Source of the DNA: Epithemia pelagica
Taxonomy: Eukaryota > Protista > Bacillariophyta
Direction of reading: 5' to 3'
Length of the DNA: 64,000 nucleotides
Assembly (NCBI GenBank): GCA_946965045.2
Contig: OX337234.1
Span: forward strand, 1,054,001-1,118,000
In this document: positions 5,778-44,589 of the stretch, one piece after another
Layout: the number at the start of each line of letters is the position of its first letter
Position numbering within the stretch: the first letter of the stretch is position 1
Made by a program: the position numbers and the translations under genes
Notes under the pieces: generated by a model
Database searches by the model: none
What the model saw: only the letters and a program-made list of their open reading frames with translations
Told to the model about the DNA's origin: nothing

Positions 5778-5796
5778 ATATGTATGAAATCGATGT

Positions 5797-5809
5797 TTCG
5801 ATGAGTAAA
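5797..5809 (-). promoter_or_regulatory. PBS position of Copia-1, complementary to LTR-internal 5857-5869 (candidate self-priming site)
   Basis: Plus strand 5797-5809 TTCGATGAGTAAA is the exact reverse complement of 5857-5869 TTTACTCATCGAA and abuts the inferred LTR end. Confidence 0.6.
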
Positions 5810-6003: not shown

Positions 6004-6508
6004 GTACATCGCTGTTCCTTGTAACCCCGTATATGCGACGGAGTAGACAAATCCCGGCTGTCCACTGCGACGAAAGTAACCATTTGATCCATGTTGCTTA
6101 CGTTGCTTCTCTTGTTACTCACTGTGCTTGACAGGCTGTTTCACCCCTTGGAAGTATGAAAGAAAAGATACCACACAGATCCCCTCCTGTCTGACGGTCT
6201 GTGCACCGCTCGACTCATGTTGCACGCCAGACGCACATCATTCGTCCGACGCGTGACCTACGCGCTTTGAACGCGCGGTGAGCTACGTATTGTGGACGAA
6301 GCAAAAAATGATGCTGACGGTCAGCACTTCCTCCCTTTGCTTCAATCTCTCAGTTGACGCTTCGGCTTCTCTTTCTCTTCTCCAGGTCCCACAGTGATCC
6401 TGAATCCTGAGAGATCTCTTTCTTCTTGGGTTTCTCGTTCGTTTGCATCACAGATGCATCTGTTCTCTTTTTATATGTTTCATTATTCCATTTGTCTGAC
6501 AAGAAAAA

Positions 6509-24800: not shown

Positions 24801-25455
24801 TTGTTCATGCGCCGATTGACAAGGATCCCAATTGGGACAAGATGACAGAAGAAGAACAAAAGAAAAGTGGCGTGTATGTTGAGATGCCGAGAGGGTTTGC
24901 ACAACCAGGGAAAGTCTTGAAACTTACTCGATCGTTGTATGGCCTAAAGCAGGCACCACGCAACTTCTTCCTTCATCTGAAAAGCAAATTGGAACAAGTC
25001 GGACTCAAGTCGCAGGAACACATTGACCCGTGTCTGTTCATGTCCGACAAAATAATCGTGCTGGTCTATGTGGACGACACATTGATTTACAGCCCCAAAC
25101 GCGAGTGGATTGATGAGTTTCTTGGGAAACTCCAGAATCAACAGAACGTGACACTCGAGATCGAAGACAGTGTAGCCGGATTTCTCGGCGTACACATTGA
25201 ACGCAACGATAGTGATGGTACTATCACGTTGACGCAGAAGGGCCTGATCAAGCGAATTGTGGAGGCACTTCACATTGGAGACAAACCCATGAAACGGCCA
25301 CCAGCATCGAAGGATCCTCTGGTGGCAAACAAAAATGGGACTCCAGCACAGTGCAAATTCAGCTATCCAAGTGTCATTGGAATGCTGCAATACTTGCAAG
25401 CACATTCAAGACCCGACATCACATATGCCGTCAGTCAATGTGCACGATACACCCA
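21812..25455 (+). pseudogene. pol: Copia-3 Pol (PR, IN, most of RT), interrupted at the His codon of YTH|DPK
   Basis: VIDSGAS, LLWHWKLGH, SIDQ, QNGVAER, KLKARFCARGD, LVYVDD, RPDITYAVSQCARYTH. Confidence 0.95.
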
Positions 25456-25551
25456 CATCTAAGGAAGGAACGGTACGCCAGATTATGGCGGTTTAATTAT
25501 CGATAAGAAAGCACCCCTAAGCGCATCCTACTAGAATCATCCGCGCGCAGG

Positions 25552-25760
25552 ACACGCGCACACCTACAAGAACACGCGCACACCTACAAGAACATGCGCA
25601 TGGCCCTTCCTCACGTTATTACTAAAAATGTGCTTTCCAGAACCAGCAAGCGCATGACCCACATTTCACCAACTTCAACACCATGCACAGTCAAGAACCA
25701 ATAGTCATCACATCCCTCCACCTTCATGCACAGTCAAGAACCAACAGTCATCACATACCC
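25552..25760. repeat. Left subterminal tandem repeats of the DNA transposon
   Basis: 20-bp unit ACACGCGCACACCTACAAGA about 2.5 times from 25552; CATGCACAGTCAAGAACCAA.AGTCATCACAT at 25682 and 25725. Confidence 0.85.
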
Positions 25761-25963
25761 TCCTATGTATGCACTCATCCTTGATTGTGTCACATCACCA
25801 TCATGCGCATTACTCCAGCATCAAGTGCAAGCAAGTTGAACACAGTGCATTTAACTAACACCATGCACACACTCCCACTAACAACCAGCGAATGCATGGA
25901 ACACAATACATGTAGCTATATAGGAGTAGTATATGAAATGAAACCAATTGTCACTCTGATCAA

Positions 25964-27956
25964 TCACTGCCACGACCGTTTTCGTGGCCTTTTAGAAGGC
26001 CTTGTCACAGCATCATCATCTGCATACCCCATTCGAGAGCGATATTGCCCATTGAGAAACATCATGAACCAGATACCGCGGTCGCCTGCTCTGTCTTCAC
26101 GAGCAATTTTCTCTTCCATATCCTCAAAATAGTCCATACCATCCTCATTCATACATCGACTTGAGTTCCAACTGCCTGAATATTTGAAGCAAGGATACCT
26201 TGCTGAGGATGTATCAATCATTTGATCAACACCATTTTCATTGTACCACCTTGGATTTAATTCAAATAGTTTCGCCTTGAAAGTGGTCTTGCCCATGTGA
26301 GTCCACACATCCCGGCAATCCACAAGGATGGTCAATATGAATGCCTCGTCACTTGAAGTGAATAACTTCAAGGCCTTTTCGCAATGTTCCTTTCCCTGCT
26401 GCTCAGTGTGGTCACCAAAATTGAAATCAATCACGGTTTTATGCATATTCTCACCATAGACACATGGACCAAACAATTGCAAGAGATATGAATAGGCATA
26501 GTTGTCACACTTCTCTCCTCTCAATAACAGAAATTCTTCCAGGGTAGGCATTGGCCCAAAGTCTTCACAGTCGTTCAAAAGGCATGGATACCTCCGCTGG
26601 AAATTACTGTCACGCCATAGATCAAGACCCACATGTTCTAGATTCAGCAACAAATTATCTCACATCTCTTTATGAGAAGACGACGTGATGAACCAACACA
26701 TTCACTCTTCGATTGACACTTACTTATGAATGCTTTTTGCATGGAAGCCAGAACATTTGATCGTTTACTTCGGAACTTGTCAAGCATATAAGGTGAATGT
26801 TCAATCCACCACTCCTCTTGTTGTTTTGCATCCGTAATACCTTTGCCTTTGAAATAGTGCTCAGTAAAATATGTTTTGCCATACTTCCCCCAAAGACCAT
26901 TCGGATCTGCCTTAGTATCTTCGGACATGGAGAAATACTTGACATAACGCCATGCCACCTTCCGAACAAATGTATCAAAGAACTTCTCCGATACCACCTC
27001 AGGCTTTTTCTTCGGCTTTTGCTTCTTATTCTTGTCCTTTTCAACAGAACCTTTGTGTGTAGTGGATGTTACAATCGTACTTGTCGGGCAAGATGATTGA
27101 TTATGGTGTACTGTTGTTGTCTGTGTTTCCTGTGCCAACTGATTTTGAATATCGTCTTGTAGAAGAGTTTCCATCGCCTGATCTGGCCCTGTTGTTAGCA
27201 AAGTAGATGACGAAGATGACGACATATCCGAAAGGGAAGAAACGTCGTTAGCAAAGGTATCACCTGATGCATTCAACCCACAAACACCCCCGTCATTAGA
27301 GCCGTCTCACCGACAAATTGTCCTCCTCCATTTTGTGCATCTAACAACTTACTGACAAGTCCTCCAGCAGGAAAATGTCTCTCATTAGGATCAAAATCAT
27401 CTCCATCATACTCACTGGGTCCATTGCTCATATTCTGCAATGCTCGTTGCATTTCAGGTCCAGTGAGAATATTTACACCGACGTCGTCTTCCTCCATGTT
27501 ATTAACTGCCGTGTTTGTTGGTTGCGCAAAACCAGATGATGGTTGTGTTCTCAGCCCACCCTGTTCATTATTGCTATCATCTGCTGAAGTCACATCGGTT
27601 CCATCTCTTTCTGAATTTGTTGCCTGCTCCAAAAGATTACCACTCCCTTCCACAGTTGTGCCTTCTTGTGCTTGTGCTTGATCGTTGTTCATCGAGATCT
27701 GTTCCTCTTCTTCCTCGTCATCAGAACTATCTTCTTGGAGTACTAAACCTCCATTGGCTGCTGCAATAAGAGCATCTTTGTTTGTAATTGTCCCGTCCTT
27801 GTTAGGAAGATTCTCTTTATTTCTTGTTGCCACTGCTGCCAAGATGCTTCTTCGTTGTCGTTCAACCTCTTTCTGATTACTTCCATAGTTTGCATTTCGG
27901 ACTGCTAAGGGTCGACGCCTCGTTGGAGCTGCATTTCTGGTGGTGACTCCTGCCAT
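25964..27956 (-). CDS. Transposon accessory gene (multi-segment, spliced), function unknown
   Basis: Three abutting ORFs. A GTAAGT donor near 26722 and a pyrimidine-rich TAG acceptor near 26638 join the last two. Acidic low-complexity N-terminus; C-terminal FTSSDEAFIL...W...KYSGSW...G..YF motif. Confidence 0.6.
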
Positions 27957-28520
27957 CGTTTATCTTGGATGCTCCGTCTGATTTATGACAAGGATGTGAA
28001 CAAGAGCAGGGTGACAACAAGTCCTCTGATGGACAACCATTCAAATTCAAATGCTGGAATGCTCCATGTTTGAATCATAAACTCCGTGTTTGAACGATGG
28101 TCATTTGGAGAACGTATGAAGATGAGCATAGGTGGTTTCAAGTACATCATACTTGTCAGATGGAACATTGGTGCATGGGTTTGAATGATTGTCATTTCCT
28201 TTCTAATGTCGACAGTGTCGGTATCCTCGGCATTGACACAGTGTTTGAATTCCAATCGCTGCTATCACCGTTGGTATCTAACCCGGCAGGCTGGATTGGA
28301 TTAAGTAAATACACACGACCGTTTGAAAATATTATGATCCGTTCATGTACATAACCGATTTTCAGTCGCTTTTATGCACCAACGTCGGCCGATTCACCCA
28401 ATGCGGAGAAATTCTGATATATGCCACAAGATTGACCACCGATGTCTCAATTTGCAGAAATCGATTACAGAGCATTTTTCATTCCGAACCAAAATCTAAA
28501 ACCACCAGCATCGTACCATC

Positions 28521-31500
28521 ATGGGCCAGCGTCGTCAAGTAAAAAAGAAGTCGCGAAAGAGATGCTCAAATACAAGCCAACAAGAGGAGTCCTTCATATC
28601 CTTTCAAGTGTGTCGTTTCTGTCAATCACGTTTTGATGCAAGAGGAATGAGCCGTCACGAAACAGTTTGTGAATTGAAAATGAACACACAAAGGAAATGG
28701 CCAAATGTTGGCGATGACAACAATGATTGTGCCAGTAATATGAATGCTGATCCAATGAATATTGATATCATGGACGATGAAACCACTATTCCGCATGCTG
28801 ACCCACCAAAAGCATACTATGTACCTGGTGATACAGATAATATTATTCTGCGCAACAGCAAGGAGTGCCCGGTTGATTTTCCTGCGTTCCTTGATAGAGA
28901 TGGGAAGCAATTGAAACTTCATAAACACGATGCAGCCTTGGTCTCACTTATGATGTTACTTCGGAAAGCTGGTTGCCCCAAATATTTGTACAATTCGATC
29001 CTGGCATGGTCGAGTGACACATACTCAAGATGCGGTCCTGGGTTCTTCCTGGACAACCATTCAAAGAGGAAAACGTTCATCGAAAAGTTTTCTTCCAAAG
29101 GTTTCAATTATCCCAAGGCAAAATTTTTCCCGGTACCAATGGAATTCACCCAAAAACAGGGTGTGGTTGTACCAGAGAGTGAGAAATCAATAACAACACC
29201 AGTATTTGATTTGATCAGTCAACTACAGCGTGTATTACAAGATCCCGATGCAACCAAGAAAGAAAATACGATCCTCGATGATGACGATCCGTATCGTCCA
29301 TATGTTCCAAACAAGCACATCCAAAATATACAAGACGGAGAAGTATTTCGGAAAACAGTGGAAAAATATAGAGATGATCCAGATGCCTTCGTGGTTGGTC
29401 TTGTCTGTTATATGGACAAAACACATGCAACAGGGGATGGAAGATATACATCGGAGCCTGTTGTAATGGTGCCATCTTTTCTAACGGAAACACAAATGAG
29501 GAAAGCAAGGCGACAGATCATCCTTGGGACTATTACAGACATGGAAAGAAAATCATCGGCGGCAAAACATATCCTCGATAAAGGGACTCCTTGCCGAAAT
29601 TATCATGCTCAATTGACTAAGATCCTCGAAGGTCTTGTCAGTATCCAAAAACAGGAAGGTTTATGGATGAAACTACGCCTCCATGGGATTATCAAAGTTG
29701 TCCGTTTGATATTGCCAATGATTGTTGTCAAAGGAGACGGGAAGTCTCAGGATAACCTTGCAGGTCGGTATGCCTCGCATCATCCAAGTGTTGGAAGACT
29801 ATCATGGTGTTGCAACATTAAACCAAGGGATAGCAGATACCCATGGCATGAATGTTCTTATATCAACGCTGCAAGTACATACAAAATGTGCTTGAATGCA
29901 TTGGGTCTTAATGAAAATCGAGAAAAACTGACTGAACAGGATGTTGATTACCAAGAGAGAGACAATGATACATTTTCGACTTTGACTGTTCCTACCTGTT
30001 TGAGCACATTGCAAGTAAGTCAAGAAAATAGCAGAGATGGAGGGGTCAATACCCTTGTGTCAGCTGCAAAAACCCAATTGCATGACATGGGACAATATGC
30101 AGTCGATCTTTGTTTTCCAAGGTTTACCTGGGTGAAGGAACCAATTCTGAACATGGGATTTTCTCGGCCAGTAGTTGTGATGTTCTTCATACATTGAAAT
30201 CTGGGATAATGAGATACATCATGATTGACTTTTTCACGTTGATGACAAAAACTGAACGGGCCATGTTTGATTATGTCTACAATTCAATCTTTCGGGCAAG
30301 TAGACAGACTGTATTCTCGTATTCATGGAAACTTGGATATCCCGGAACATCATTCTCGACCGGGATCAGTAACCTGTCAAAAGTAACTGCCAATGAGTGG
30401 GTTGGGATCATGTTTGCTTCAGCAGCTCTATGTGCCACTGCCAGAGGTCGCCTTATATTTGCGAAGAATATGGCAAAGAAATGGAACAAGGTGGTTGCGG
30501 AATGGAAAAAACGACAAGCAAAGCAAACATCCAAAACCACCAACAAGACATGTCAAGCGGACGTGGATCAAGTGCAAGAGACAAGTGAACTTATTGCTGA
30601 CAATGAGGATGATACTCCACCAGATGAAGAGTACGAACGTACACGTCTTGATGATGATGATAGTGTTGACATTGATATCACAGCTGAAACTGTTTTTGAT
30701 GATGACCCAGTTGCTTACAGGTCTATCTGGGATGTTGATGAGTGGGAACCATACATAGACTTCCTGCATCTATTCGAGACTCTTTTGTGTTTCAACAGCT
30801 GGATTCGTATGGATACATTCTGGGAAACAGACCCAGACTCACAAGAAGGACAAACAACAGCATCCAAGTCTCTCGAATCAGTGCGGATTTTGATGGATGG
30901 CATCAGGAGATATGCACCCAGGCTCGATAAAAAAGGCAAATTGATGTCCAACGGGTGGATGATACCAAAATTCCACAATCTCATACACATTATACAACAG
31001 ATTCAGAATTTTGGACCAGCACGACTGCTTGATGTGGAGTCAGAGGAAAGTAATCATAAGGAAATTGTGAAATTGAATGCAAAAACGGTACAGAAACGTG
31101 GAAAAGGAATTTTTGAGTCGCAACTTGCAGAAAATATCTGGTGGATGCAAAGCTTGGAAATGCTGCAGGAAGCAACAGGTCTTGAAGAAGATCATGTCAC
31201 CTTTCTCCAGGAAGGGAAGTCACCTTATGAAATAAGGAGAAAAAAGGGATCCCAAAACCAACTCCCTACCACATCAAAACCTCAAATAGCCGTGGAACGG
31301 TCATAGTAGTATCCATGACCAGAGAAAAATGTTTGATTCCAGTACCTCACACGAACGTACATACTTCTGGTGATAATCAAGACCAGTCATCAAATGAAAT
31401 AGACAAGGATCTTCCGTCTCCATTGGGTATGTCGATTCAAGTTCCAGGCACGACCAGAAAAGAACAAGACGGATCAAACCGAAACCAGACGAGTAGTGTA

Positions 31501-32300
31501 CACAGGCGATTGACAGCAGCACCACACGAGGAGGATGTGGTATCAGTGAATATCAAATTCCATTCCAAAACAAATCATGACATGACATTGCCACAGTTTT
31601 GTAATCACTTCTTTCGATTACATTACAAACGCTTTTTTCATCATATAGACGGGATGAGTGATGATCCAACAAATGAGACTTCAACCACACTGGAATTGTT
31701 CGGGAGCACAGAACTTAAGTTCGAAGACCCCAGGATAGGAAATATACGGGCTCATCCGAATTATCAAAGCGAGGGGCCATGGAGAGATTGGGTGATGGCT
31801 AAAGTTCCAAAGAAAAAAAGGAAACCTCTTGACGAGGTATACAACCAACCTCTCGGAGAATTTGATACCATCCTATGTCAAACGATATGCTTCATTCAAA
31901 TACCCATTACTCGAACAGACCACATACAAATACAACCATCACCGGTATGTCAACCTTCAACTTCACCCGAGATGACCCATGTCCTTCTCTGAACGACATA
32001 TGTACGGAGTGCAGCTGATATCGAGAAATCATCCGTTCTCTTTCAAAAATGGCGTAAGCGTTTTGACCTACATCGAATAGCTGAAATTGTCATGGTTCCA
32101 CTCCGGAATATTGTTGAGGTTGTTGGTGTAGTGGATGAGAACCCAGAAATGATTCAAGACCGTGATTTTATCCCCAACATATTTCCATTCTTCACTTGAA
32201 AAAGATTTGCTCCAAGAAGACAGTCGTAATTTGAGAAACTTTAGTGACAATGTCTGGGCCGTACGCAACATCAAAGAATGGGCTTCCGAATTCAATGAAA
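28521..32300 (+). pseudogene. Plavaka/CMC-like DDE transposase with frame disruptions (about 30110, about 31306, TGA at 31990)
   Basis: N-terminal CxxC..H..C finger, then IQDG, YMDKT, NYHAQL, VKGDGKSQDNLAGRY, CDVLHTLKSG, PKFHNLIH..IQNFG...EESNHK, IRAHPNYQSEGPWRDWVM and a terminal WASEF, matching the motif series I associate with Plavaka-type transposases. Confidence 0.8.
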
Positions 32301-32582
32301 GTGCCCGTGACAATCTCGAGAAACGCTCTAATGAAATGAAAGAAAGATTGAAACAATCCGTCAGCAATTCGACCTCATGATCATAATTTGCCTCTATGGG
32401 GGGTTGTCACATACCAGCACTCCCCTCCTAATCTCCCCCCCCCCCCCCAACCGTACGCGAGCCGACCAATTCAACTCAGAGTGTCACACACAAATTGGAT
32501 GAAATAGTAGATACTTTCCATCGTTTTCCAAAAGTCATCCTCAGTCTTCAGTCAGTTAGGCTATTCTACTCCTCTTCAAACA

Positions 32583-33709
32583 ATGATCAACCCATACAAA
32601 TCGAGGAAGAAAACAGTTCCACCCTTGGTGGTCAAACCAAACTTTCCAGTCACAAAGATACCTCCATCTAATGAAGAAATGATGATCAACCCATACGAGC
32701 TAGAGGAAATAGGGACCCCCATGGTCAAAACGCACTCTCCAACCCCGAAAACTTGCGACGGTGAACATGACAAGAAGCCACCGCCTGCGTCCAAATCAAT
32801 AATCAAATGTCATCCACTTCCTTCTTCTAAGCTTGATACCAAGGAAGAAGAGGAGAAGAAACTTCCACCAATCAAGCGCCCATCGTATCAGTTGATCCCA
32901 AACCCATATAAGAAGAAGCTCAAGGTTGCCGATCCATCTACTATTCCAATCTTGCTATTACATGACTCTCCTCCAATGTGTAAACCAAGAGCAAACCGAG
33001 ATAAGCTGCATCTCGAAGTTATTCGGTTCACCGAGCTTGTCAATAAAATCTATGGATCCAATGATGTTCCCCCAGAGCCAGTCTGTCCTTGGTGTTTTGT
33101 AACCGACAACCTTTCAACAGATCGTAGACTTACAGGAAAATGTTGGCATCGCTTCGGTAAATCTCTCTCATGTGCCGATTGTTGTTATGGTTGTGGAGTG
33201 CCCATGAACGGATGTGATTCAGGTGGGAATGAACGTTGTTGCACCGAAGCCCTGTATATCCATGATTCGATGAATATCACACGCGAAGAATCAGACATAA
33301 ACAAAGTTCCATTGGTGTGTAAGTCTTGCTTAAGGCCATGCAATTCTTATTCAGAATGCGTCTTCTCGCATGGTTGTTGGAACTCTTGCAACAAGTACTT
33401 CGTCTGGCGATTCTGTCATATTGCTGGACGGGCGTTGGTGTACTCACAATTGAAGCCCAATTGCAAAGGACCAGGCACGATTCCCAAACATGCACAGGAT
33501 ATTATCAAAACCCAACAGAGTTGATGTACAACGAACTGCGAGATCCGATGGAGTCTTCTCAGTACACATCTCCATTTTGTCATGTTCTTGACCAAGACTC
33601 CTGGTCTAAATGGCTTGTATCCATGTCTTTCGGTCGATACTACAATTACATGCCGTTCTTCCGTCATTGTTACACAGCCTTGATGTCTTCATCGAAACCA
33701 TTGTATTAA
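32583..33709 (+). CDS. Cys-rich putative zinc-binding protein, paralog 1 (ORFs 32583-33524 and 33326-33709, frameshifted)
   Basis: CPWC, CYGCGVP, CKSC, NKYFVWRFC, then WSKWL..NYMPFF in the second frame; three NPY motifs in the N-terminus. Confidence 0.6.
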
Positions 33710-33813
33710 ACAAAGACTCGACTTCTTCGAAAGGCAAACTTGTTACACAGCCTTGATGTCTTCATCGAAACCATTGTATTAAACAAAGACTCGACTTCTT
33801 CGAAAGGCAAACT
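33668..33813. repeat. Perfect 73-bp tandem duplication
   Basis: TGTTACACAGCC...GAAAGGCAAACT at 33668-33740 and 33741-33813. Confidence 0.95.
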
Positions 33814-33843
33814 GGGAACAGATAACAAGATTTATAATATATG

Positions 33844-34896
33844 TCAATGATCATTACCATCCATATTTCCACGTTCCAACTCCGCCGTCTCAGCCATTCT
33901 TTCGAGACAATTACGGAAGCACCTGACAAAGAGTGGCATGTAGTTGCGAAAACCAGCCGTAGAATGAGGCAACGAAAGCAACCATACTGCCCATGTTTTA
34001 TCAGATGCTCGGGCATAATCGTATGGGGCACAATCGTTATCATCAAAATAGAAACGGGATCGCAATTCCTCAAGCCAAACGCTGCGGACAATAGTAAACA
34101 TTGGCCAGGTGATTTGACGGGGAAAGTTCACACCATCGTAAAATGATGTTATTTGAAAAGTACGCGCCACAATATGGCGTATGAGCATACAGAACTGCCA
34201 CACGAAGTGCTTATTCTCAGATTCCACACAGACACTGCATGAATCCAAATCTGGTTGTGGAATCCCAAAAGGTATTGAGCGTTCGGGAATTCGGAAACAT
34301 TCCCTACACACCTGACAATGAAATGTTGGATGCCTGTGGCGGTGACATAAGTTACAACGCATCAAAAAATTCTGCTGCCAGATAACTGAATAATCGAGAT
34401 ATGCCGCACGTGTTACCACTGTAGTATTTCCATGATTGCACTGGTGATGTGGTGTGGGACGACCAAGGATAACACAGTATGGACAGAGTTTCTCACCTCT
34501 AAGCATTTCGTCCACCAACCGTTTGAATTCAGTCTGGATCTCATGACCGACACGCATCTCTTCTCTGAGTTGTTCTATGACTTGTGGTACATCTTCTTCT
34601 TCATTATCGTAATCAAAAAAGATCCTCCCAGCGTCTCTGTAACAAGGCCGATCATTCACTTCCAAGTTCCTGTCGTTGATCGCCCGCATTTCTCGTCGTC
34701 GTCTACGTTCCCGAACATAAAAATCTTCTTCCTCCGATTCATCTCCCGATTCATCCTCCGGTTGGTCCTCCGGATTGTCAGCCATTCTGTTTGCAGTCTC
34801 CTTCTCTTCGTTTTGCTGTGAATGCAAATACCTGTACTTGTTGCTTCTTCTTTGGATTTTTATGAAACCTCTGCTGTCATATGAACGAGAGTTCAA
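33844..34896 (-). CDS. Cys-rich putative zinc-binding protein, paralog 2
   Basis: CPYC, CNLC, CRECF, NKHFVWQFC, WAVWLL..RNYMPLF; same motif order as paralog 1. Confidence 0.7.
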   Translation of the reverse strand: MNSRSYDSRGFIKIQRRSNKYRYLHSQQNEEKETANRMADNPEDQPEDESGDESEEEDFYVRERRRRREMRAINDRNLEVNDRPCYRDAGRIFFDYDNEEEDVPQVIEQLREEMRVGHEIQTEFKRLVDEMLRGEKLCPYCVILGRPTPHHQCNHGNTTVVTRAAYLDYSVIWQQNFLMRCNLCHRHRHPTFHCQVCRECFRIPERSIPFGIPQPDLDSCSVCVESENKHFVWQFCMLIRHIVARTFQITSFYDGVNFPRQITWPMFTIVRSVWLEELRSRFYFDDNDCAPYDYARASDKTWAVWLLSLPHSTAGFRNYMPLFVRCFRNCLERMAETAELERGNMDGNDH

Positions 34897-35378
34897 CTGG
34901 AAATAGATCCACGGATAACCGATCGGTCGCGTTTGTGTACAGAAATCGCCACACTATACTATTCACTGTGAGTATTACCACATACTGTGAGGATAAGTGT
35001 AATCATTCCCAACATGGTCGCGTTTCACTCGCTGGGCTGACCTATCGGTGTGGCTTTGCAAAATTTCCATGGACATGGAACAATGACATGCTTCTAGAAC
35101 TCGAATGGCTCCAAATTTTCGTAGAGACCATTTGGGTATCATTTGCATGGACAGTAAAGGCTCTGAACTTGTCTATCATCAACCAAAAGACTTGCAATAG
35201 ACCCTACCGGTGTGGTGTTGCCGTCGTCCCAAAATTCTATGGACATGGAGCAACGACATGCTTCTAGAGCTCGAATGGCTCCAAATTATCTAGAGACCCT
35301 TGGGGTATCATAGGCATTGATTGATGGTAGGTAGTGGTTTTGCTGATAGGTGGACATGGTCTTGTATATTAGAAATCT

Positions 35379-36314
35379 CTATTCGTCACTAGATTTCTGG
35401 CCCGACGCCAAGCCTCCAATTTCATGAGAATTGTCATCCTCGTTTTGTGTTACGGTAGCACTCAAAGATCTTGCATTTGTGCTAAAAAACCAACCAATCG
35501 TATGATTTCCCACATTCTTGTCTTTAGGTGGTATGGAGTGTGTATGGACAGATGTTCCATGTCTGATGATTCTCCCGTCCCATGCGATCGCAATGCCATG
35601 GAATAACCGGATACAAAGCCCATGATAAGTCTTGTCCTTATGCTTTATAAGGACATTGGGAAGGACGAAATACCAATTGTTGGTGCTGCCCGGGTTGGTT
35701 TCTGTCCAGATTGTAAAGGACACTGATGCATCATGAATATCATAGTGGCTTGCATTCATCAAATCGCAACTCAAAATGATGGATGATGACACACCCCTTT
35801 CGTTTCCTCCCAATTCGTTTGGGACATCCAAACCGAAGTTTGTTTCCAGGTGTCTGAAAGCCGATAACACACCAGGGAATTTCCTCTCACAGAATCGCCG
35901 AACACCTCCACAGATTTTTGGCAATATATTCATCATGTTTGGAGATATTTTGAAAAGTTTGTCAGAAAAGAATGTACTTCTGCCACCCGTTTTTGTGCAC
36001 ACACCAACAGATGTCATGGTCCCCATATCACCATGGTTACACCTTGCATTGGCTGATCTCTCTAGTGTACCGCTCTGCGCGAAGTGACATGACCTCTTGT
36101 GTAACAATGAAAGTAGGTTTTTGTCATTTTGCTGAAGTGTTGTCACTTTGACATGGCTGATGGTTTCGTTTTTACCCGCGTACCCACGTGTCCGAACAAT
36201 GAATGTTGTATCTTCTCCGGTTTCCCTTACATCAAACAGAAGCGGACGGACCGAAGTATCAGGCGGAGGGGACAGGTTTCTATATATAATGCTCCATGGA
36301 CGTACTTTCGGCAT
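35379..36314 (-). CDS. TET/JBP-like 2OG-Fe(II) dioxygenase domain
   Basis: R..HGDMGTM..VG N-terminal motif, NASHYDIHD (HxDxxD), WYFVLP, GLCIRLFHGIAIAWDG and distal RHGT His, consistent with a double-stranded beta-helix. Confidence 0.72.
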   Translation of the reverse strand: MPKVRPWSIIYRNLSPPPDTSVRPLLFDVRETGEDTTFIVRTRGYAGKNETISHVKVTTLQQNDKNLLSLLHKRSCHFAQSGTLERSANARCNHGDMGTMTSVGVCTKTGGRSTFFSDKLFKISPNMMNILPKICGGVRRFCERKFPGVLSAFRHLETNFGLDVPNELGGNERGVSSSIILSCDLMNASHYDIHDASVSFTIWTETNPGSTNNWYFVLPNVLIKHKDKTYHGLCIRLFHGIAIAWDGRIIRHGTSVHTHSIPPKDKNVGNHTIGWFFSTNARSLSATVTQNEDDNSHEIGGLASGQKSSDE

Positions 36315-39025
36315 CCTGTCTTGTTAGCACTGGCTTTATTCAGCAGTGTTTCACGATACCACACTCTAAGAGAATGTTGGTCATTTGGTGTGATTTTTGG
36401 TCTGGACTTTTCACTTGTATAATGATCAGGGGCCCAAAGTGGAGAACCACTTTCGACATCAGACGCTTGGTAGCATTCATGGACAACTCTCTTTGCACTT
36501 TGTGTCCAATCAAAACACCAACACTTGACAACCTTTTTGAGGAATGCCCCACCACTTGGTTGGCCGTCCGAATGTCGTAAACGCAGCCAGGATATAGGTA
36601 GTGCTACCAAAGATGAAGTGCATTCCGATGTTGCATACCCAGTATTCATTATCATTGCCGAAGTATAAAAAATACCGGCCAAAGGGATGATAACGATCAC
36701 GTCATGGAAAATATGGTCCATACAATCATCACAGTTTTTCTTGGATGTGCGACAATGGAAGATTGTATCGTCAAACGCAGACCACATGGTTTTGGGGTAT
36801 TTCCGATGTCCCTTATGTCGTTGACAGCGATTCAGTACACATTCTACCAAGAAGGCACATGGAGACCGGGTTGTTAAGAACTTCGGGTCACATTCTGTCA
36901 CATGAAGCTTGTTGTCTTCGAAACAACAATGGCTTGCTGGATCTTCCGTCACCTCACCAACCACGTCTTTCATTTGTTTGTACATGTTAGGTAATTTTCC
37001 CATGATTGTCTGGAGGTCTGTTGGTGTGATGTCGTAGTCTTTCAGAACCTTTGTATAGCAGATGCCAAACATTCTCCGATCATCATTGCTACTGAGACAG
37101 AGTGATAGTAAGTCGCATAGTCTTTTTGCTACCTTGTCCATGTCAGGAATTCCAAAAAAACACATTTCTGTATGATCGGATTCATTTGGTTTGGAGAATT
37201 TTGTCGTCAAATGGCTAGGTTTCTCAGCCTGTCGTCTCTTATACTTATTCATCGTTTCATGTGTTAGTGTCAACTTCGATAGGCCCTCTTGTCGTCGTTG
37301 CTTGTTCGTGGGTAGTCCCCTGGATGAACCAATGGTCTTACATCCTTTTCTTTTCCTTTCCGGTGAAGTATTCTGTTCGTCAGTATCGTCTTGATTACCG
37401 TGTATTGGAGACTCGTGAATCTCCTTCGTACCTCGTTCGTCTTGTATGCGCTGATCCGTTTGTGTTGTCGTGTTGATGCTACTTCCCTTGTTATGGTCGT
37501 TTTTTGTCATTTGGTCATCGTTGTTCTTGCTGCTACCTTTTTGTTTGTCGGTACTATCCTTTCCTTCTTTGGTTTGTGTCGCATCATCTTGGTTGACACT
37601 GTCATTGTGACAGCTAGACGGATTATCACTGTCAGGTGTGTTGTTGGCATTCTTAGACCCGTTCTCTCCTGAATTTCCGTGTTGTTCGTAAGCAACAATC
37701 TCTTGCTTGCCACATTCCTTGCCCTTTTGTTTGTCTGTAGAACCGTTGCCATCTCTGCTTTGTATCTCTTCTCCTTGTCCACATTCATCTTGGTGACTGG
37801 AGGTTGCTTTCTGACCGCTCTGTCTGTTCCAATCATCCCTCTCCTGATTGTCCTTGGAATTCCAACTAAGTTTGGATAGGCCATCCTGCCCTCCACGACT
37901 CGCTGTAGTGTGATGAATGCCCTTTTCTCTCTCTCTACGAGGTGATTGATTTGGTTGACTATTACCTCTATCAGTTGAGGGACGGTTAGGCTCTCTCTGA
38001 CGGGTACGCCTAGTATGTTCGTTGTTTCCAGGACGACTGTCTCTAAGTGACAAATGGTGCCTGGAATGTTCGTTGTATCCAGGGAATCTCTCCCAATCCA
38101 TCGGATGTCGATTAGACCATTGATTGTGGCTATCTCTATATACCGAATGGTGCCTTGTATGTTCTCTGGAATGTTTGTTGTATCCAGAGAATCTCCTCCA
38201 ATCCATCGAATGTCGATTAGACAATTGATTTTGATTATCATGTCTTCTTTTTCTATCCCGGTAAGTGTTTTCCATGATTTGATCTCTTCTCCCTCTAGAC
38301 TCGTCTTGGTGGTTATCATGGTATCCATGTTGGTCTTGTCGTTCAATGACTCCTCTTCTAGTTTGTTGGTTATCTTGATCGAAATGTGAATGACGAGACC
38401 CATGATAAACAGATGTATTAGATCCTCTCGATCCTGGATGATCATCATTGAATCGATTCTGTCCATGCTGACAATACACTGGCCTGTCATGTTCAGGTTG
38501 CGAACCCCACTCATTTGTTCTGGGGCTTTGAGCTGTCGACAGGACGTTGTTCTGATTCCGTCCTCCCCACAGCCCATGTGGATTCTCTCTCTTGTCCTTG
38601 GTTCTTTCGTTATCATGTTGGGTTTGCTCTGTTCTATGTCTTTCTTCAGGCAGCTCACTCCGGTTACCCCAATTCGCAGGCATTGCAACGGAACGTGATG
38701 AGTTATTTCCTCCCCATTGCTGGTATTTAGCCTTCTCACCCTCTGGTGACTGATAGATTGCTTTGTGTTCAGAAGGATGAGTATATTTTCTTTGAACAGA
38801 ACGTGTCATAGGACAGAAGTACAATAGACTTTGAATATCCTGGCTGCACACCATACATGTGTTGTGGCCCCGCTGCATCCAATCTCCAACACATTCCCGA
38901 CAAAATGTATGTCTACAAAGAAACAGTTCGCAATCCACTTTTCTGGTCATACAAATCGAACAAACCTCGGGCTTGTATTTTGTCTCAACTCCTCTTTGTT
39001 CTAGTGTTGACGGCTTGTTACTCAC
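36227..39025 (-). CDS. RING-HC protein with long low-complexity linker and uncharacterised Cys/His-rich C-terminal domain
   Basis: CSIC...CRHTFCRECV...CMVC; no ATG upstream of the RING in this frame; internal duplication NRH.MDW.RF.GYN.HSR. Confidence 0.75.
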   Translation of the reverse strand: MSNKPSTLEQRGVETKYKPEVCSICMTRKVDCELFLCRHTFCRECVGDWMQRGHNTCMVCSQDIQSLLYFCPMTRSVQRKYTHPSEHKAIYQSPEGEKAKYQQWGGNNSSRSVAMPANWGNRSELPEERHRTEQTQHDNERTKDKRENPHGLWGGRNQNNVLSTAQSPRTNEWGSQPEHDRPVYCQHGQNRFNDDHPGSRGSNTSVYHGSRHSHFDQDNQQTRRGVIERQDQHGYHDNHQDESRGRRDQIMENTYRDRKRRHDNQNQLSNRHSMDWRRFSGYNKHSREHTRHHSVYRDSHNQWSNRHPMDWERFPGYNEHSRHHLSLRDSRPGNNEHTRRTRQREPNRPSTDRGNSQPNQSPRREREKGIHHTTASRGGQDGLSKLSWNSKDNQERDDWNRQSGQKATSSHQDECGQGEEIQSRDGNGSTDKQKGKECGKQEIVAYEQHGNSGENGSKNANNTPDSDNPSSCHNDSVNQDDATQTKEGKDSTDKQKGSSKNNDDQMTKNDHNKGSSINTTTQTDQRIQDERGTKEIHESPIHGNQDDTDEQNTSPERKRKGCKTIGSSRGLPTNKQRRQEGLSKLTLTHETMNKYKRRQAEKPSHLTTKFSKPNESDHTEMCFFGIPDMDKVAKRLCDLLSLCLSSNDDRRMFGICYTKVLKDYDITPTDLQTIMGKLPNMYKQMKDVVGEVTEDPASHCCFEDNKLHVTECDPKFLTTRSPCAFLVECVLNRCQRHKGHRKYPKTMWSAFDDTIFHCRTSKKNCDDCMDHIFHDVIVIIPLAGIFYTSAMIMNTGYATSECTSSLVALPISWLRLRHSDGQPSGGAFLKKVVKCWCFDWTQSAKRVVHECYQASDVESGSPLWAPDHYTSEKSRPKITPNDQHSLRVWYRETLLNKASANKTGCRKYVHGALYIETCPLRLILRSVRFCLM

Positions 39026-40653
39026 GGGTGATTTTTTGATGATTCTTCAGGGCGTCCCTCAATCGTAGTTGTAGTGTCTTCGACTGTTTTCCTATGTCCC
39101 TCTTCAGGGAATCCCTCGCTCGTAGTTGTAGTCTCTTCCGCTGTTTTCTTGTGTCCCTCTATCTTCTCCGCACCAAACATGTGGATGTTACTCTTGATCT
39201 TTTGTCCACACTGGGGACACCATACATTATGATACTTGAACCGTATTCGTAAGCAATTTCCGTGAACCAGATGTCCACATGGGATGAGGGTACAGACTTC
39301 GCTGTCTGTATCTGTTTTCAATGCCCTGTTACAGCATACGCAAGAATCTGGACAATATACAACGGTCGGTAGCAATCGATTTATATCTCTCTTGGAAATT
39401 TTGGAGTCAAGTAACACCTCCTTCGGTTCTAATCCCACCTTCGGGCACGGTATGAACAATATGTCACAATCCGTAGTCCACGTCTCTGAACACCCACCAT
39501 CAGATAGATCGACGTTCTCCTTGTATTCGTATTTATCGGTATCACGTGAAAACCCCACTTCAACGGGATCATCGTCGCTGTTACCATCGAAATTGTCAGG
39601 TCCCAACACCAAAGGAGAAATCGAATTGCCACCAACAGCATGCTCTAGTCCTCTCGAAAATTCAGTATTGTACCGTATTTGATTACTCGAAAAACAATTG
39701 GATATCGTCATACTCTTGTCTATCTGACCTTCTTTCCGACCCGGGTTTGGTCGACTACTCATTATGTTTCCAAGCATTCTGATCACAATAGCTTGTGGCA
39801 TTGGCTTTGGAGTATCCTTCTTAGGTTCGGGCATTTTCACAATGCGATATCGCCACTTGTTGCATTCCTTGTTTGTATCATGTGTTGTTTCATCTTCTTC
39901 CACTAATGATGGGTCATAACATAGTCTGACAGGCGGGGCACCTTTTGACGTATTGACCAGGTCCCATTTCCGTAGTACATGACGCGTCGTTCCTTCCCAG
40001 TATTGGTCTGATCGATTATGTATTGGTTCGTAGATATGAAGTATCTTTTTGTCGATTTCGAAAGCCAATAAAGCTGGGTCGCTGACATCAGTTGCTGTTG
40101 TCAAGGCAATGATCGCCAATATCAGTGTGTTCGGATCCTGTTGTCTCCATGATGACATAGGAATTTTCTTAGGAAATGGGTTCCTGTTTGCTTCATCAAA
40201 TGTTACTTTGTCAACATATACTAGGTTCTGATGGTTGTGATGGACCATCAATTTCAAACAAGTATAGAAAGACTCAATCGGCATGCCCGTCCTTGAAGTG
40301 TTGTAGCAAAGATCTCTCCGACGATGTCTATGTGGGATATGCAAAACACGCGTTGTAGGGTCCTGGTCATTCATCAACCCACTGTAAGACATGCATAGTG
40401 TGCACCTAAATAATGTCTTGATTTCGACATGCGTGTTGTCCTTCCCCATACTCTTAGCATACTGGGTTGCTAGCTTCATGGCCGACTTGATGTTCTCGTT
40501 GTTTCTGTTAGTTTGTTTTTCCGCAAACTTGTCTAAGTAACCGTCACCAATGTTGTCGATGGATTCATTTGAGTCCCATGAGTCTTTTCTTCTCTTCTGG
40601 TTTACTATAGGATCAAGAACGTGTGGAATTTCAATGAAAGGCGGTGGTACCAC
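39022..40653 (-). CDS. RING-H2 protein, 543 aa, with a possibly degenerate Ulp1/C48-like central region
   Basis: CVCC...CGHLVHGNC...CPQC. The Ulp1-like resemblance (LLAFEIDKKILHIYEP) is weak. Confidence 0.7.
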   Translation of the reverse strand: MVPPPFIEIPHVLDPIVNQKRRKDSWDSNESIDNIGDGYLDKFAEKQTNRNNENIKSAMKLATQYAKSMGKDNTHVEIKTLFRCTLCMSYSGLMNDQDPTTRVLHIPHRHRRRDLCYNTSRTGMPIESFYTCLKLMVHHNHQNLVYVDKVTFDEANRNPFPKKIPMSSWRQQDPNTLILAIIALTTATDVSDPALLAFEIDKKILHIYEPIHNRSDQYWEGTTRHVLRKWDLVNTSKGAPPVRLCYDPSLVEEDETTHDTNKECNKWRYRIVKMPEPKKDTPKPMPQAIVIRMLGNIMSSRPNPGRKEGQIDKSMTISNCFSSNQIRYNTEFSRGLEHAVGGNSISPLVLGPDNFDGNSDDDPVEVGFSRDTDKYEYKENVDLSDGGCSETWTTDCDILFIPCPKVGLEPKEVLLDSKISKRDINRLLPTVVYCPDSCVCCNRALKTDTDSEVCTLIPCGHLVHGNCLRIRFKYHNVWCPQCGQKIKSNIHMFGAEKIEGHKKTAEETTTTSEGFPEEGHRKTVEDTTTTIEGRPEESSKNHP

Positions 40654-40735
40654 ACCATCACCTGTCTCCTCATTTCCCTTGTTTATGGAAGCACAACGTC
40701 TCTAAGACAAAGAGATCAATCATTTTTGAGATTGT

Positions 40736-41923
40736 CTAATCCTTCTCGATTCTTGGCAAGTCGCTCGAACATCTTACCTCGTTGTCTGCGGTTTTTTCAT
40801 CGTCGTCGCTTATAATCTTCCTGACCTCTTCCACACGGTCTGATTTGAGGGCGACTTGGTTCGACGTTGTAATGGAAGTTGGTAGTACTTGTTCCTTTCT
40901 CTCGTCAGTAGGATCATTACCAGCGACGACCTTCTGTCTCTTTTTTGCCGGCGAGTCTGTACTCCGACGTTGCACGGCAATTTCTTTCGATTTCCTGGCA
41001 GACAGTAACTCTTGTTTTTCTATATAATGCAGTAGATCGTAGAACATACCGCCATCGTCTCCGTTTCTTCCATATTGTACCAAAGAATCTCTTTCTTCAA
41101 GGTACATCTTGAACCATGTGTCAGGCATCGTATACAACAGTGCTTTCTCCATTTGGATATTGGAAATCACGTCCATGTTCTCGTCCGATGTCGATTCTGA
41201 GATGAAACGGTGTATGGCCACCATATGTTCGATAACCCATGCGATTTTACCAACAGGTACGAGACGCGGTTTCCTGTAAAGGGAGGAATCATCTAGAAGG
41301 TATCGTTTCAATGCTTCTCCAATCCCACCGATCCCCTTGCGTGTCTTCTTAGAGACTAAGCCATGAGAGGAAAGAAATCTGATAATGGTTTGTCTCAGAT
41401 TCTCAGCACTGTCTATCACTGTCGTCCCAAATGCCTGATTCCAAATATTGGAAACAGGACTGTAGAGAGTCTTTTTGAACAACAGTCGAGCAACCATTGG
41501 AGTCAACTTGTCATCATCATCCATCTCGTTCTTAATTCTTGTGAAACAGAAAACGGAGTGACAGATGATATCTTGGAATGCAGGCGAATAACAGATTGGT
41601 AGGAATATCTTCACATAATGGCCGTCATGTGGTACCTCCACTGTTGTCCATTTTCCTGATTTGTCTTGGAAAACACTTTCATACCAATTGAGGACACTTT
41701 CGTATGTAATGGGCATAATACCGGTGTAGTGAGATTCCTCGCTTGTGTGTGTTCGAAGTATATGATTGGTACCAGAAACAGTCATAGTCGACACGTCCTT
41801 TCTTTTGTTTCGCACTTCATCATTCATTGAAGAAGGGTCACCAGGATTCTTGGCGGTCGGTGGCTTTTTGTAGCGAGGGCCCTTGATGCGGTTGCCCGCC
41901 ATTTTGTACTTGTCACGATGCAC
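40736..41923 (-). CDS. Hypothetical protein, 395 aa
   Basis: Long ATG-initiated ORF co-oriented with the neighbouring cargo genes; no confident domain. Confidence 0.6.
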   Translation of the reverse strand: MHRDKYKMAGNRIKGPRYKKPPTAKNPGDPSSMNDEVRNKRKDVSTMTVSGTNHILRTHTSEESHYTGIMPITYESVLNWYESVFQDKSGKWTTVEVPHDGHYVKIFLPICYSPAFQDIICHSVFCFTRIKNEMDDDDKLTPMVARLLFKKTLYSPVSNIWNQAFGTTVIDSAENLRQTIIRFLSSHGLVSKKTRKGIGGIGEALKRYLLDDSSLYRKPRLVPVGKIAWVIEHMVAIHRFISESTSDENMDVISNIQMEKALLYTMPDTWFKMYLEERDSLVQYGRNGDDGGMFYDLLHYIEKQELLSARKSKEIAVQRRSTDSPAKKRQKVVAGNDPTDERKEQVLPTSITTSNQVALKSDRVEEVRKIISDDDEKTADNEVRCSSDLPRIEKD

Positions 41924-41928
41924 TTTTT

Positions 41929-43240
41929 GTGTAGCGTCTTTGTTTCAACAACAACAACAACAACAAGGGTAGTCGAGGAAGCGCTTTAATTGTAGCGTCT
42001 TTGAGACAACCTTGTGTACTTGTCTAAACAGTAAAAAGTGTGCGCTGAATTGTGTAGCGTCTTTGGTTTGGTCCTGAACTCTGGTGGTAACAAAACAACA
42101 ACCAAATCGAAGGAATACACTACGACGCGCTTTATGTGTAGCGTCTTGTTCGTTGTGATCCAACAATCGGTGCCAGAATTTGCTACTCCAAAACCAGGGG
42201 TTGGTTGGTTGTCCAAGCAATCTCGCGACAAGAATAGAACAGAAGCAACTGGCTACCACCGTGTCACACTGCTTGCTTTGGGTCTGTTCTATTCAAGTCG
42301 GAGTATCACGAGGACAGGAGGGTTCTTGATAAACAATCTAACAGATAGCCCGAAACCGCTTTAATTGTAATAGCGTGATTGGAATGAAGGACAGAGCTGA
42401 GTGAAACAAGCAACAATCAGACAGATGCCCCAAGCCGCTTTAATTGTAGCGTGGTGATTGGAATGGCAGAGCTGCAAGATAGTGCAAGTGTCAAAGATAG
42501 GACAAATGTCGACAATATTTCGATTGCTCTGGTGGTCGTTCTTCTTCTTGGGTTCCTCTTCTTCTTGTTTTCCTGTTGTAGCGGTTTTGGAGTGAAGGTC
42601 GTGGTTGAAAGGAAGCAAGCAACAATCAGACAGATGCCCCAAGCCGCTTTAGTTGTAGCGTGATTGGAATGGCAGAGCTGCAAGATAGTGCAAGTGTCAA
42701 TGTCTCGAATGCTCTGGCCGTGCTTGAGTTCCTCTTCCTCTTCTTCTGGTGCAGCGGTTTTGGAGTGAAGTGTTGTAGCGGTTTTGGAGTGAAGGTCGTG
42801 GTTGAAAGGAAGCAAGCAACAATCAGACAGATGCCCCAAGCCGCTTTAGTTGTAGCGTGATTGGAATGGCAGAGCTGCAAGATAGTGCAAGTGTCAATGT
42901 CTCGAATGCTCTGGCCGTGCTTGAGTTCCTCTTCCTCTTCTTCTGGTGCAGCGGTTTTGGAGTGAAGGTGGCTGAAGAGGAAGCAAGCAACAAAAAGGTG
43001 ACTGAAAAGGAACCAAGCAACAATCAGACAGATGCACCAAGCCGCTTTAATTGTAGCGTGATTGGAATGGCAGAGCTGTTAGGTTGGTGAAAGAAGTTGG
43101 ATAGGTGAAAGGATTGAAAAGGGAATCTCGGCAGAGAGAAAGCAAGCAACAAAAAGGTGGCTGAAAAGGAACCAAGAAACAATCAGACAGATGCCCCAAG
43201 CCGCTTTAATTGTAGCGTGATTGGAATGGCAGAGCTGTTA
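41929..43240. repeat. Right subterminal complex repeat array of the DNA transposon
   Basis: Core CCGCTTTA(A/G)TTGT..AGCGTG..ATTGGAATG at about 42356, 42435, 42644, 42841, 43042 and 43201; TGTAGCGTCTT at about 41930, 41991, 42053 and 42136. Confidence 0.9.
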
Positions 43241-43965
43241 GGTTGATGAAAGAAGCTGGATAGATAATGGGATTGAACAGGGGAATCTCGATAGCGTTGG
43301 GTGATCGATTGCTGTTGTTGCTGCTGCTGCTGCTGCTGTTGTTGTTTGTTGTGGTGTGTTGGGTGGAGGTGGAGGGAGATGAATGAGCATCGATTCTGGT
43401 GGTCGTTGATTGTTGAATGACTAGTATGCTAAGTTGTTCGGTTTTGTTCGATGGATCAGAGTGTCGAGTTGGTAATCCCCGCGGTTTGGGTGATTGGGAA
43501 GGAGGATCCATCTGAGACATTCTTTGGGACATCCATGTGCGTCAGTCTTTCTGGCAGCTGCTGTGTGATGTGGTGGGAGTGGAAATTAGTGATTCAAAGG
43601 TGAGGGGACAGACGCTTGCGCATGAGGGTTGCGTCATGCGCGTCTCGGGGGGGTCGAGCGCGCCAGATAGTTGTAGTGCGTATTAGCGGAGTGTGGCGCG
43701 CGTTATTCGTGGTTTGATCGCGGGCTTGTGCGCATTAAAATTGTTGCATGCGCGTGATAGTCAGCTCGATCTCTAGAACTAGCTAGAGAAATGTGCATTG
43801 TTAGACCTAGATTTGCAGATTTAGTTGGGAAAGCAGGATTATAGTTAAAAACTGCGCATATAAAAATAAACTGCGCATAAAAAATTTTAATTCGGCGAAT
43901 TTTTTCTAGAAATTCGCTTTTGGGGGTGGAAATCAAGCGCCAGGGCAAATTTCCCTCCTTAGATG

Positions 43966-44589
43966 CATGATCCTAAGACAACACACGAAGAAGCATTAGA
44001 AAGGATCGGACAATACTTGAAAGGGACAATGGAGAAAGGACTCATCCTCCGTCCAACTTACGACAATCTCAACGTTGATTGTTACGTTGATGCAGACTTC
44101 GCGGGTCTGTGGCCACATGAGGATAAGATGGATCCGTCATGTGTCAAGAGCCGAACTGGGTTTGCCATCTGCATCGCAAACTGTCCAGTCATTTGGCAAA
44201 GCAAGTTGCAATCGGATATTGCAACATCAACAATGGAGGCGGAATACACAGCGCTCAGTGTGGCGATGAAATCTGTGTTGCCTCTTCTGGAACTTCTGAA
44301 AACTGTGGCACGAGGTGTCGGCATGACAGAAGATCAGAGCACGAAATTCAAAACCACAGTGTGGGAAGATAACAATGGTGCCCTGACGCTCGCGAACATG
44401 GAGCCGGGCAGGTTCACACTAAGATCAAAGTTCTATGCGATTCGAATGCACTGGTTTCGATCGCACTTAAAGCCGAATCGAGTCACGGTTGAAAAGATCG
44501 AGACATCAAAACAACGTGCAGACATAATGACAAAGGGTCTGACGAAAGATACATTTGAAACAATTCGGAAGCTACTGTGTGGATGGTAG
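43966..44589 (+). pseudogene. pol: Copia-3 RT C-terminus and RNaseH (continuation of 21812-25455)
   Basis: HDPKTTHEEALERIGQYLKGT, YVDADFAG, TMEAE, EDN, RADIMTK. Confidence 0.95.

Follow-up and report, generated by a model that had tools for sequence, protein, structure and literature searches.

The CMC superfamily of transposons was reportedly delineated by Yuan and Wessler in 2011, and the PlavakaB elements of Agaricomycetes are said to go back to work by Iyer et al. in 2014. Plavaka has been grouped with EnSpm, Mirage, Chapaev, Transib, ESTA and Lanisha in a 'CMCT' clade (Kojima 2025, PMC12730594). PlavakaB elements have target-site duplications (TSDs) of 2-3 bp and termini reading CATCA..TGATG, and some of them harbour a TET/JBP gene (PMC12730594). 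Giant Plavaka elements of 17-19 kb, with accessory genes that include a 2-oxoglutarate (2OG) oxygenase, have been described in the red algae Bostrychia moritziana and Chondrus crispus (bioRxiv 10.1101/2025.02.11.637652). An anti-silencing role has been proposed both for the fungal TET-bearing transposons (PMC12730594) and for the red-algal PAG3 (bioRxiv 10.1101/2025.02.11.637652). Here, we describe an element of 18.5 kb that interrupts a Copia element in a 64-kb stretch of Epithemia pelagica DNA (positions 1,054,001 to 1,118,000 of contig OX337234.1), called the window hereafter; positions are those of the whole window unless another contig is named. The element is very probably a young, multi-copy class II transposon of a diatom, with a divergent Plavaka-lineage transposase that belongs to a CMC/Transib-related clade and with five accessory genes.

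The transposon spans 18,510 bp (25456-43965) and is flanked on each side by the dinucleotide CA. Its left junction (25446-25470) reads GATACACC CA followed by CATCTAAGGAAGGAA, and its right junction (43951-43974) reads TTCCCTCCTTAGATG followed by CA TGATCCT. The 15-nt terminal inverted repeats (TIRs), of the form CATCT..AGATG, are complementary at 14 of 15 positions (93%; CATCTAAGGAAGGAA against the reverse complement CATCTAAGGAGGGAA; pair I24 of the repeat finder). Taken alone, this pair is not significant, as 23 of the 44 inverted pairs in the same 18.8 kb are longer, which puts it in 24th place. Since such an inverted repeat is unremarkable, the ends were fixed by independent evidence. In the host genome (60.5 Mb, 23 contigs), the terminal 400 bp of the left and right ends match 31 and 27 places, respectively, and nearly all alignments stop at the presumed end base. 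We extracted 100 bp around every end and paired the ends into copies, which yielded 21 pairs. A perfect 2-bp TSD is present in 20 of them (binomial P ~1e-23 against a chance of 1/16), and its sequence varies from copy to copy (GA five times, TA four times, TG three times, CA, AG and AT twice each, TT and CT once each). The sole paired copy that departs from this pattern lies at C16:3130006-3144168, where ACTC flanks both ends as an apparent 4-bp TSD.

The insertion point lies in the region of the Copia element that encodes the reverse transcriptase (RT) and RNase H. Removal of the transposon together with one CA extends the Copia open reading frame (ORF) from 1,216 to 1,421 amino acids (aa), through CARYTHDPKTTHEE. 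The 26-mer predicted for the empty site, with a single CA, has 13 exact occurrences in the genome, all of them in uninterrupted paralogues of the host Copia, and its reversed control has none. Furthermore, contigs from three public sequencing runs of the same organism depart from the window exactly after 25455 and continue with post-insertion Copia sequence, TGATCCTAAGAC. The boundaries of the transposon are confirmed to the base. An earlier, sequence-only reading of the window had proposed these ends, the 15-bp TIRs, the CA TSD and the restoration of the Copia RT frame upon excision, and it had suggested looking for other copies with the same termini and 2-bp TSDs and for empty Copia sites; on all these points, its expectations were borne out. 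Having at least 13 uninterrupted paralogues with the exact 26-mer, the host Copia is itself a young multi-copy family.

Approximately 25 genomic copies have both termini, and the spans between paired ends range from 3.6 to 20.3 kb. Along its entire 18.5 kb, the window copy is colinear with full-length copies on contigs C17 and C2 (98.4-98.9% identity), which are 99.5% identical to one another. Several copies retain a transposase frame of 1,292 aa as well as a frame of ~1,775 aa for geneE, one of the accessory genes. Derivatives of 3.6, 5.4 and 8.0 kb have lost internal segments and kept both ends, which is how cut-and-paste elements usually decay. With its 18.5 kb and its several genes, the element might bring to mind a virus-like integrant of the Polinton/Maverick type, or a segmental duplication. 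We consider it extremely unlikely that the element is anything of that kind, as more than 20 loci have flanks that bear no relation to one another and a 2-bp TSD of their own, the deletion derivatives maintain both ends, a DDE transposase is present, and no polymerase, integrase, capsid or packaging ATPase domain was found in Pfam scans.

The window copy differs from the intact C17 copy by 199 mismatches and 14 indels. Frameshifts affect its transposase (30113, -1; 31276, +2; 32172, +1), geneC (33507) and geneE (positions in Table 1), and two of the lesions also differ from the run contigs. Because these frameshifts break three genes, the window copy is dead and non-autonomous. With both of its ends preserved, it could still be mobilised by intact sister copies. 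The family probably remains active, since other copies are intact and 99.5% identical to each other. Contigs of two runs (X1 and X2) leave the element after position 26473 and enter unrelated sequence, which suggests that some copies are truncated there or carry another insertion at that point.

As for the transposase, it has a CxxC..H zinc finger at its N-terminus and belongs to a large set of related proteins, with 1,417 relatives at E <= 0.001 in an exhaustive HMMER search. Two proteins labelled with the Plavaka family PF18759 (P0007 and P0008) match it at E values of 4.6e-14 and 6.9e-11 in a word-indexed search of 5.8e9 sequences. BLASTP alignments with PF18759-labelled proteins cover the blocks of the D, D and E residues (CYMDKT; KGDGKSQDNL; PKFHNLIH..FG...D..SEESNHK). 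PF18759 is found in 21 of 39 aligned full-length homologues, and no other Pfam family is found among the 39. D299, D406, E843, C431, H557 and H819 are invariant across the alignment and H823 is nearly so; motifs of the CMC group are present, namely the DDE triad, LH (H557) and H819-x3-H823. The AlphaFold (AF2) model of the core (residues 230-900) has a predicted local distance difference test score (pLDDT) of 83 and a predicted template modelling score (pTM) of 0.84. In a Foldseek search, RAG1 and RAG-like proteins occupy the first 44 places among its PDB matches, over ~650 columns (E values down to 1.1e-6, probability 1.00), and weak matches to HzTransib come next (E values of 0.06-0.5, probability 0.06-0.51). 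The termini are identical to those of PlavakaB at four of five positions (CATCT..AGATG compared with CATCA..TGATG), and the TSD length is within the PlavakaB range, both in this family and in a sister family described below.

Several observations weigh against a simple assignment to Plavaka. PF18759 matches neither the intact 1,285-aa transposase nor the fragments of the window copy, even at E <= 10, so that the hidden Markov model check proposed in the sequence-only reading for the joined transposase failed at every threshold tried. A genome-wide search with PF18759 gave no match either, and this search is uninformative because no control genome gave matches. At the position of the C-x2-C motif of the clade, the transposase has C-C, with C431 the sole invariant Cys and C445 near-invariant. 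In addition, the TM-scores to RAG1 are modest (0.3-0.47). A profile search of the transposase alignment against PDB sequences returned no meaningful match. Altogether, a Plavaka-related transposase, most like that of PlavakaB, is well supported, but a position strictly within Plavaka, and not next to it, is unproven. The kinship with Plavaka/CMC that had been read from the letters alone thus largely stands, if by an indirect route, by virtue of the homologues with PF18759, the DDE, LH and H(3)H motifs, the RAG1-like predicted fold, the ends and the TSD, while the same cannot be said of strict membership.

A 2-bp TSD is also the hallmark of Mirage in the Repbase classification. Alternatively, then, the element might belong to another CMC lineage, Mirage or canonical EnSpm/CACTA, and be merely remotely similar to Plavaka. 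The silence of PF18759 on the transposase itself would fit this possibility, as would the fact that some Plavaka-like transposases have been reclassified as EnSpm on the basis of their termini and TSDs (Kojima, PMC12730594). Nevertheless, we find it unlikely. The homologues match PF18759 alone, and Pfam scans detected Transposase_21/24 domains neither in the transposase nor in its aligned homologues. The termini, CATCT, are close to the CATCA of PlavakaB and are not CACTA, and the TSD is 2 bp rather than 3 bp long. Moreover, a TET/JBP partner gene is typical of PlavakaB (PMC12730594). The link with TET/JBP and the large size also recall the fungal KDZ elements, another TET/JBP-associated group of transposons (PMC12730594). 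That the element is of the KDZ/Zisupton type has next to no probability in our view, given that the Zisupton TSD is 8 bp long (PMC12730594) and not 2 bp as in 20 of 21 copies here, that no KDZ Pfam family appears among the homologues and that the predicted fold is RAG1-like. In another part of the genome (C3:489664-494703), three transposase-core segments (52-60% identical to the query transposase) are arranged with a spacing of 1,980 bp in a single frame of 2,730 aa, which represents a tandem triplication.

Besides the Plavaka-related element of the window, the genome harbours a second family of giant elements, exemplified by a copy of 21,484 bp at C16:2999074-3020557 (loci L061-L063), with termini CGTCTAAGG..CCTTAGACG, that is, CGTCT..AGACG, and the 2-bp TSD TA. 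As the termini of this sister family are CG..CG, a 5'-CA is not universal, and the CA..TG termini put forward in the sequence-only reading cannot serve as a family-wide hallmark. We read the intact gene set of the first family from the C17 copy (loci L051 and L060), whose transposase lies at C17:2375870-2379727. The six genes, i.e. the transposase and five accessory genes, are in the same order in both families (identities in Table 1). The joins between domains differ, since in the second family the TET part is a separate ORF of 681 aa, and geneF, the N-terminal region of geneE and a RING finger, located at the end, form one ORF of 951 aa. The second-family element also has large internal tandem arrays with periods of ~170 and ~105 bp. 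At approximately ten further loci, a TET-like ORF is found 10-14 kb from a transposase match.

A more distant relative was identified on a metagenome contig (L067; ENA ERZ27315315 k141_2029390). It encodes a transposase 36% identical to ours (nt 3172-7149), and it has a terminus, CATCTAAGG (nt 38), ~3.1 kb upstream of the transposase, as in the window element. A homologue of geneA exon 3 is present on this contig, with three minus-strand ORFs in the position of geneA. Downstream of the transposase, there is an unrelated minus-strand gene of 1,018 aa. Another metagenome contig (L068), whose transposase is 27% identical, has neither the common terminus nor an accessory gene.

CACTA-type elements are well known for capturing genes, and four of the five accessory genes have no recognisable Pfam domain. 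The non-transposase ORFs could therefore be viewed as captured host passengers, akin to Pack-type cargo, without a role in the biology of the element. The comparison of the two families makes this very unlikely: the sister family, whose termini are different, has kept all five genes and their order, at identities of 24-50%, a divergence comparable to that of the transposases, which are only 53% identical to each other, a geneA homologue lies beside the 36%-identical transposase of the metagenome contig, and TET-like ORFs occur in the vicinity of transposases at the ten or so other loci. Because the order has been preserved across such divergent transposases, and in view of the geneA homologue of the metagenome contig, the accessory genes are seen as long-standing parts of the lineage rather than recent passengers. 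The sequence-only reading had counted at least seven cargo ORF segments. The count was right, and the segments turn out to be exons or frameshifted pieces of five genes; the description 'cargo-rich' is misleading, as these genes are present in every full-length copy as well as in the second family.

The product of geneE is composed, in this order, of an N-terminal domain, two RING fingers, a long low-complexity region and a C-terminal TET/JBP-like domain. Modelling and comparisons indicate that its C-terminus is likely a 2OG-Fe(II) double-stranded beta-helix fold closest to TET/JBP. The last 431 residues have 26 homologues, and in the 27 sequences H310-x-D312, R368, R371 and H372 of the TET-like domain are invariant. 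By our own reading, the HG(x8)R(x2)RHGTS block of geneE presumably aligns with the HGS...R..LHATT block of animal TETs. The AF2 model of the domain has a pLDDT of 76 and a pTM of 0.81. Its top 25 PDB matches, with E values down to 1.8e-9, are human TET2, Chlamydomonas CMD1, Coprinopsis CcTet and Naegleria Tet1 (NgTet1), and those that follow are FTO, AlkB and other 2OG oxygenases. In a language-model search, 24 of 30 matches belong to Tet_JBP clusters, the first being a diatom cluster. A search of PDB sequences with the profile of the domain alignment gave no meaningful match. We most likely have in geneE a protein that would act against silencing, on the methylated DNA or the chromatin of the element, by analogy with known systems.

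Some points speak against this view of geneE. In the model, the HxD loop has a pLDDT below 50, and the TM-scores to TET proteins are modest (0.3-0.56). PF12851 (Tet_JBP) matches neither the geneE protein nor its 26 homologues; it also found nothing genome-wide, a search that is uninformative since control genomes were silent too. The action against silencing is itself inferred. Lastly, every sequencing run in which the element was strongly represented is a DNA-like assembly from the same organism, none being an RNA run. A third group of TET-like ORFs, of 614-650 aa and 34-39% identical to the geneE domain, is present at C5:847405-932004, C2:4855527, C7:2231542, C10:104652 and other places. Several of these ORFs are clustered on contig 5, and they are either transposon-borne or host genes.

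How such an element might operate can be outlined. The 15-nt TIRs, and probably the GCGCA-rich subterminal repeats as well, would be the binding sites of the transposase, which would then excise the element and reinsert it at a 2-bp staggered cut with little target preference. Repair of the stagger would then generate the 2-bp TSD. Defective copies, the window copy among them, might be mobilised by intact ones. The product of geneE might counter methylation-based silencing, to which the RING fingers would add a ubiquitin-ligase function. A wider scenario, which we put forward tentatively and regard as possible rather than probable, is that of an old diatom lineage of giant Plavaka-related elements owing their success to a self-encoded anti-silencing module. 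In this scenario, the RING-RING-TET/JBP protein would oxidise the element's own 5-methylcytosine and ubiquitinate a chromatin or silencing factor, possibly guided by the internal tandem arrays and by the Cys-rich products of geneC and geneD. Such a module and the PAG cassette of red algae may have a common origin.

Table 1. Features of the transposon and of its insertion site in the window, with amino acid identities between the two families of giant elements
Feature	Position	Strand	Identity, family 1 vs family 2	Basis or details
Host Copia pol ORF, upstream part (RVT_2), broken after first CA	21812..25455	+		Pfam RVT_2, E 3.3e-31; frame resumes at 43968
Left TSD copy, CA	25454..25455	.		2-bp TSD in 20 of 21 paired copies
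Left TIR, CATCTAAGGAAGGAA	25456..25470	+		Identical in >20 copies
Left subterminal 20-bp tandem repeat, GCGCA-containing	25552..25600	+		Repeat finder, motif scan, copy comparison; one unit fewer than C17 copy
Left subterminal 43-bp tandem repeat	25682..25774	+		Repeat finder (D12)
geneA, three exons	25964..27956	-	36-50% (exons 2/3)	Predicted introns 27264-27352 and 26638-26723
DDE transposase, pseudogene here, 1,285 aa intact	28521..32380	+	53%	Homologues, DDE triad, RAG1-like predicted fold
geneC, Cys-rich, 375 aa intact	32583..33813	+	40%	geneD paralogue; frameshifted at 33507
geneD, Cys-rich, 355 aa	33844..34896	-	31%	Paralogy comparison with geneC
geneE, one 1,760-aa ORF when intact, split in three here	35379..40653	-		Indels at 36281 (+2) and 39032 (-1)
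geneE, predicted TET/JBP-like 2OG-Fe(II) dioxygenase domain	35379..36314	-	42%	Invariant residues, AF2 model, PDB matches, language-model matches
geneE, RING finger 2 (C3HC4), residues ~563-609	38828..38968	-		Pfam PF13920/PF00097, above cut-off
geneE, RING finger 1 (RING-H2-like), residues ~438-488	39208..39348	-		Pfam PF13639, E 8e-4, weak, below cut-off
geneE, N-terminal part			24%	
geneF, 388 aa in intact copy	40736..41923	-	27%	
Right subterminal tandem array, five units of ~159-209 bp	42403..43290	+		Repeat finder (D1-D4)
Right cluster of four TGCGCAT motifs	43617..43878	+		Motif scan
Right TIR, TTCCCTCCTTAGATG	43951..43965	+		Repeat finder and paired genomic copies
Right TSD copy, CA	43966..43967	.		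Window sequence and paired copies
Host Copia pol ORF, downstream part	43968..44589	+		Rejoined frame, empty-site 26-mer, run contigs

Pfam scans of all the ORFs, including at E <= 10, yielded only the RING fingers and the domains of the host Copia. The predicted introns of geneA, of 89 and 86 nt, have the form GTAAGT..AG and are both in phase 1, which by arithmetic exactly reconciles the three reading frames of the gene; the comparisons with other sequences were made exon by exon. Joints seen in one sequencing run were rejected as introns, as their sides are 25-29 nt long with non-canonical ends. At the 3' end of geneC, a perfect tandem duplication of 73 bp (33667-33812) is found in the window copy only and is not present in the C17 copy. 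An atlas search with geneF gave sub-threshold leads to DUF6532 and DUF6698 (Basidiomycota), which we did not use as evidence.

The sequence-only reading had also named subterminal repeats among the traits that typify the CMC/CACTA group, and the 20-bp, 43-bp and ~160-210-bp arrays listed in Table 1 agree with this. The 20-bp repeat varies in copy number, and the five-unit array sits 0.7-1.6 kb from the right end. In addition to the right cluster, TGCGCAT motifs are present near the left end, at 25595 and 25804. Six of the eight TGCGCA sites of the element are within 350 bp of one of its ends.

The host of the transposon is a diatom, since its genome contains at least 11 full-length silicon-transporter genes (PF03842, E values down to 1e-226), in agreement with the stramenopile host proposed earlier. 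Loci of this type were found on C11 (1001834, 1004536, 1112749, 2732032, 3159754 and 3165384), several as tandem pairs, and more are located elsewhere. The element is also represented, more weakly, in marine biofilm and sediment metagenomes.

For a Plavaka-related element from neither fungi nor red algae, our analysis provides ends defined to the base, together with TSDs, target sites, copies both intact and deleted, and a second, related family. The conservation of the accessory set across 53%-identical transposases argues that the presumed cargo is the transposon's own machinery. For annotation, ~25 copies of 4-20 kb and a second family of 21.5 kb are accounted for, which might else be taken for host genes, orphans by the dozen. 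As the family looks recently active and transformation and methylome methods are available for this group, transposition and a TET-based escape from silencing are directly testable. If the proposed function is correct, a major phytoplankton group would harbour a transposon-borne epigenetic counter-defence system.

Among described systems, RAG1/Transib is related through the predicted fold. The core of the transposase aligns over ~650 residues with RAG1 and amphioxus RAG-like proteins (PDB 4WWX, 6CG0, 6DBT, 6B40 and 6PQN). However, the sequence identity is ~10%, with no match to PDB at the sequence level, the Transib TSD is 5 bp long, and we identified no RAG2-like partner. The window element has in common with EnSpm/CACTA and Mirage a short TSD (2 bp in Mirage), subterminal repeats, a large transposase with the same order of motifs and accessory genes, which are frequent in those groups; it differs from EnSpm/CACTA by the termini, the length of the TSD and the lack of Transposase_21/24 in the protein and its homologues.

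The red-algal Plavaka elements resemble the window element in their size, conserved accessory genes, 2OG domain, internal tandem arrays and EnSpm/Plavaka lineage. In those elements, DNA-methylase and SET domains belong to PAG2 and a ParB-like domain to PAG3, none of which is detected here by Pfam, PAG1-3 having been compared by description only. The RING fingers set the diatom element apart from its red-algal counterparts, and so does its copy number, ~25 as opposed to a third of the genome for the red-algal Plavaka. With PlavakaB of Agaricomycetes (PMC12730594), it shares the 2-bp TSD, termini that agree at four of five positions, homologues bearing PF18759 and a TET/JBP-type gene inside the element. 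It differs by its host, a diatom rather than a fungus, by a transposase too divergent for PF18759 in which C-x2-C is not kept, by a length of 18.5 kb and a set of five accessory genes where PlavakaB has one, and by the fusion of the TET-like domain, too divergent for PF12851, to two RING fingers.

In full-text searches, whose coverage is incomplete, we found no paper that deals with transposons of the Plavaka, EnSpm or TET/JBP type in diatoms or other stramenopiles. TET-bearing PlavakaB elements in fungi and accessory-gene Plavaka elements of 17-19 kb in red algae are already published. What appears to be new is the diatom host, the six-gene layout across two families, sequences that lie beyond both Pfam models and the RING-RING-TET fusion, an architecture that is unreported as far as we have checked.

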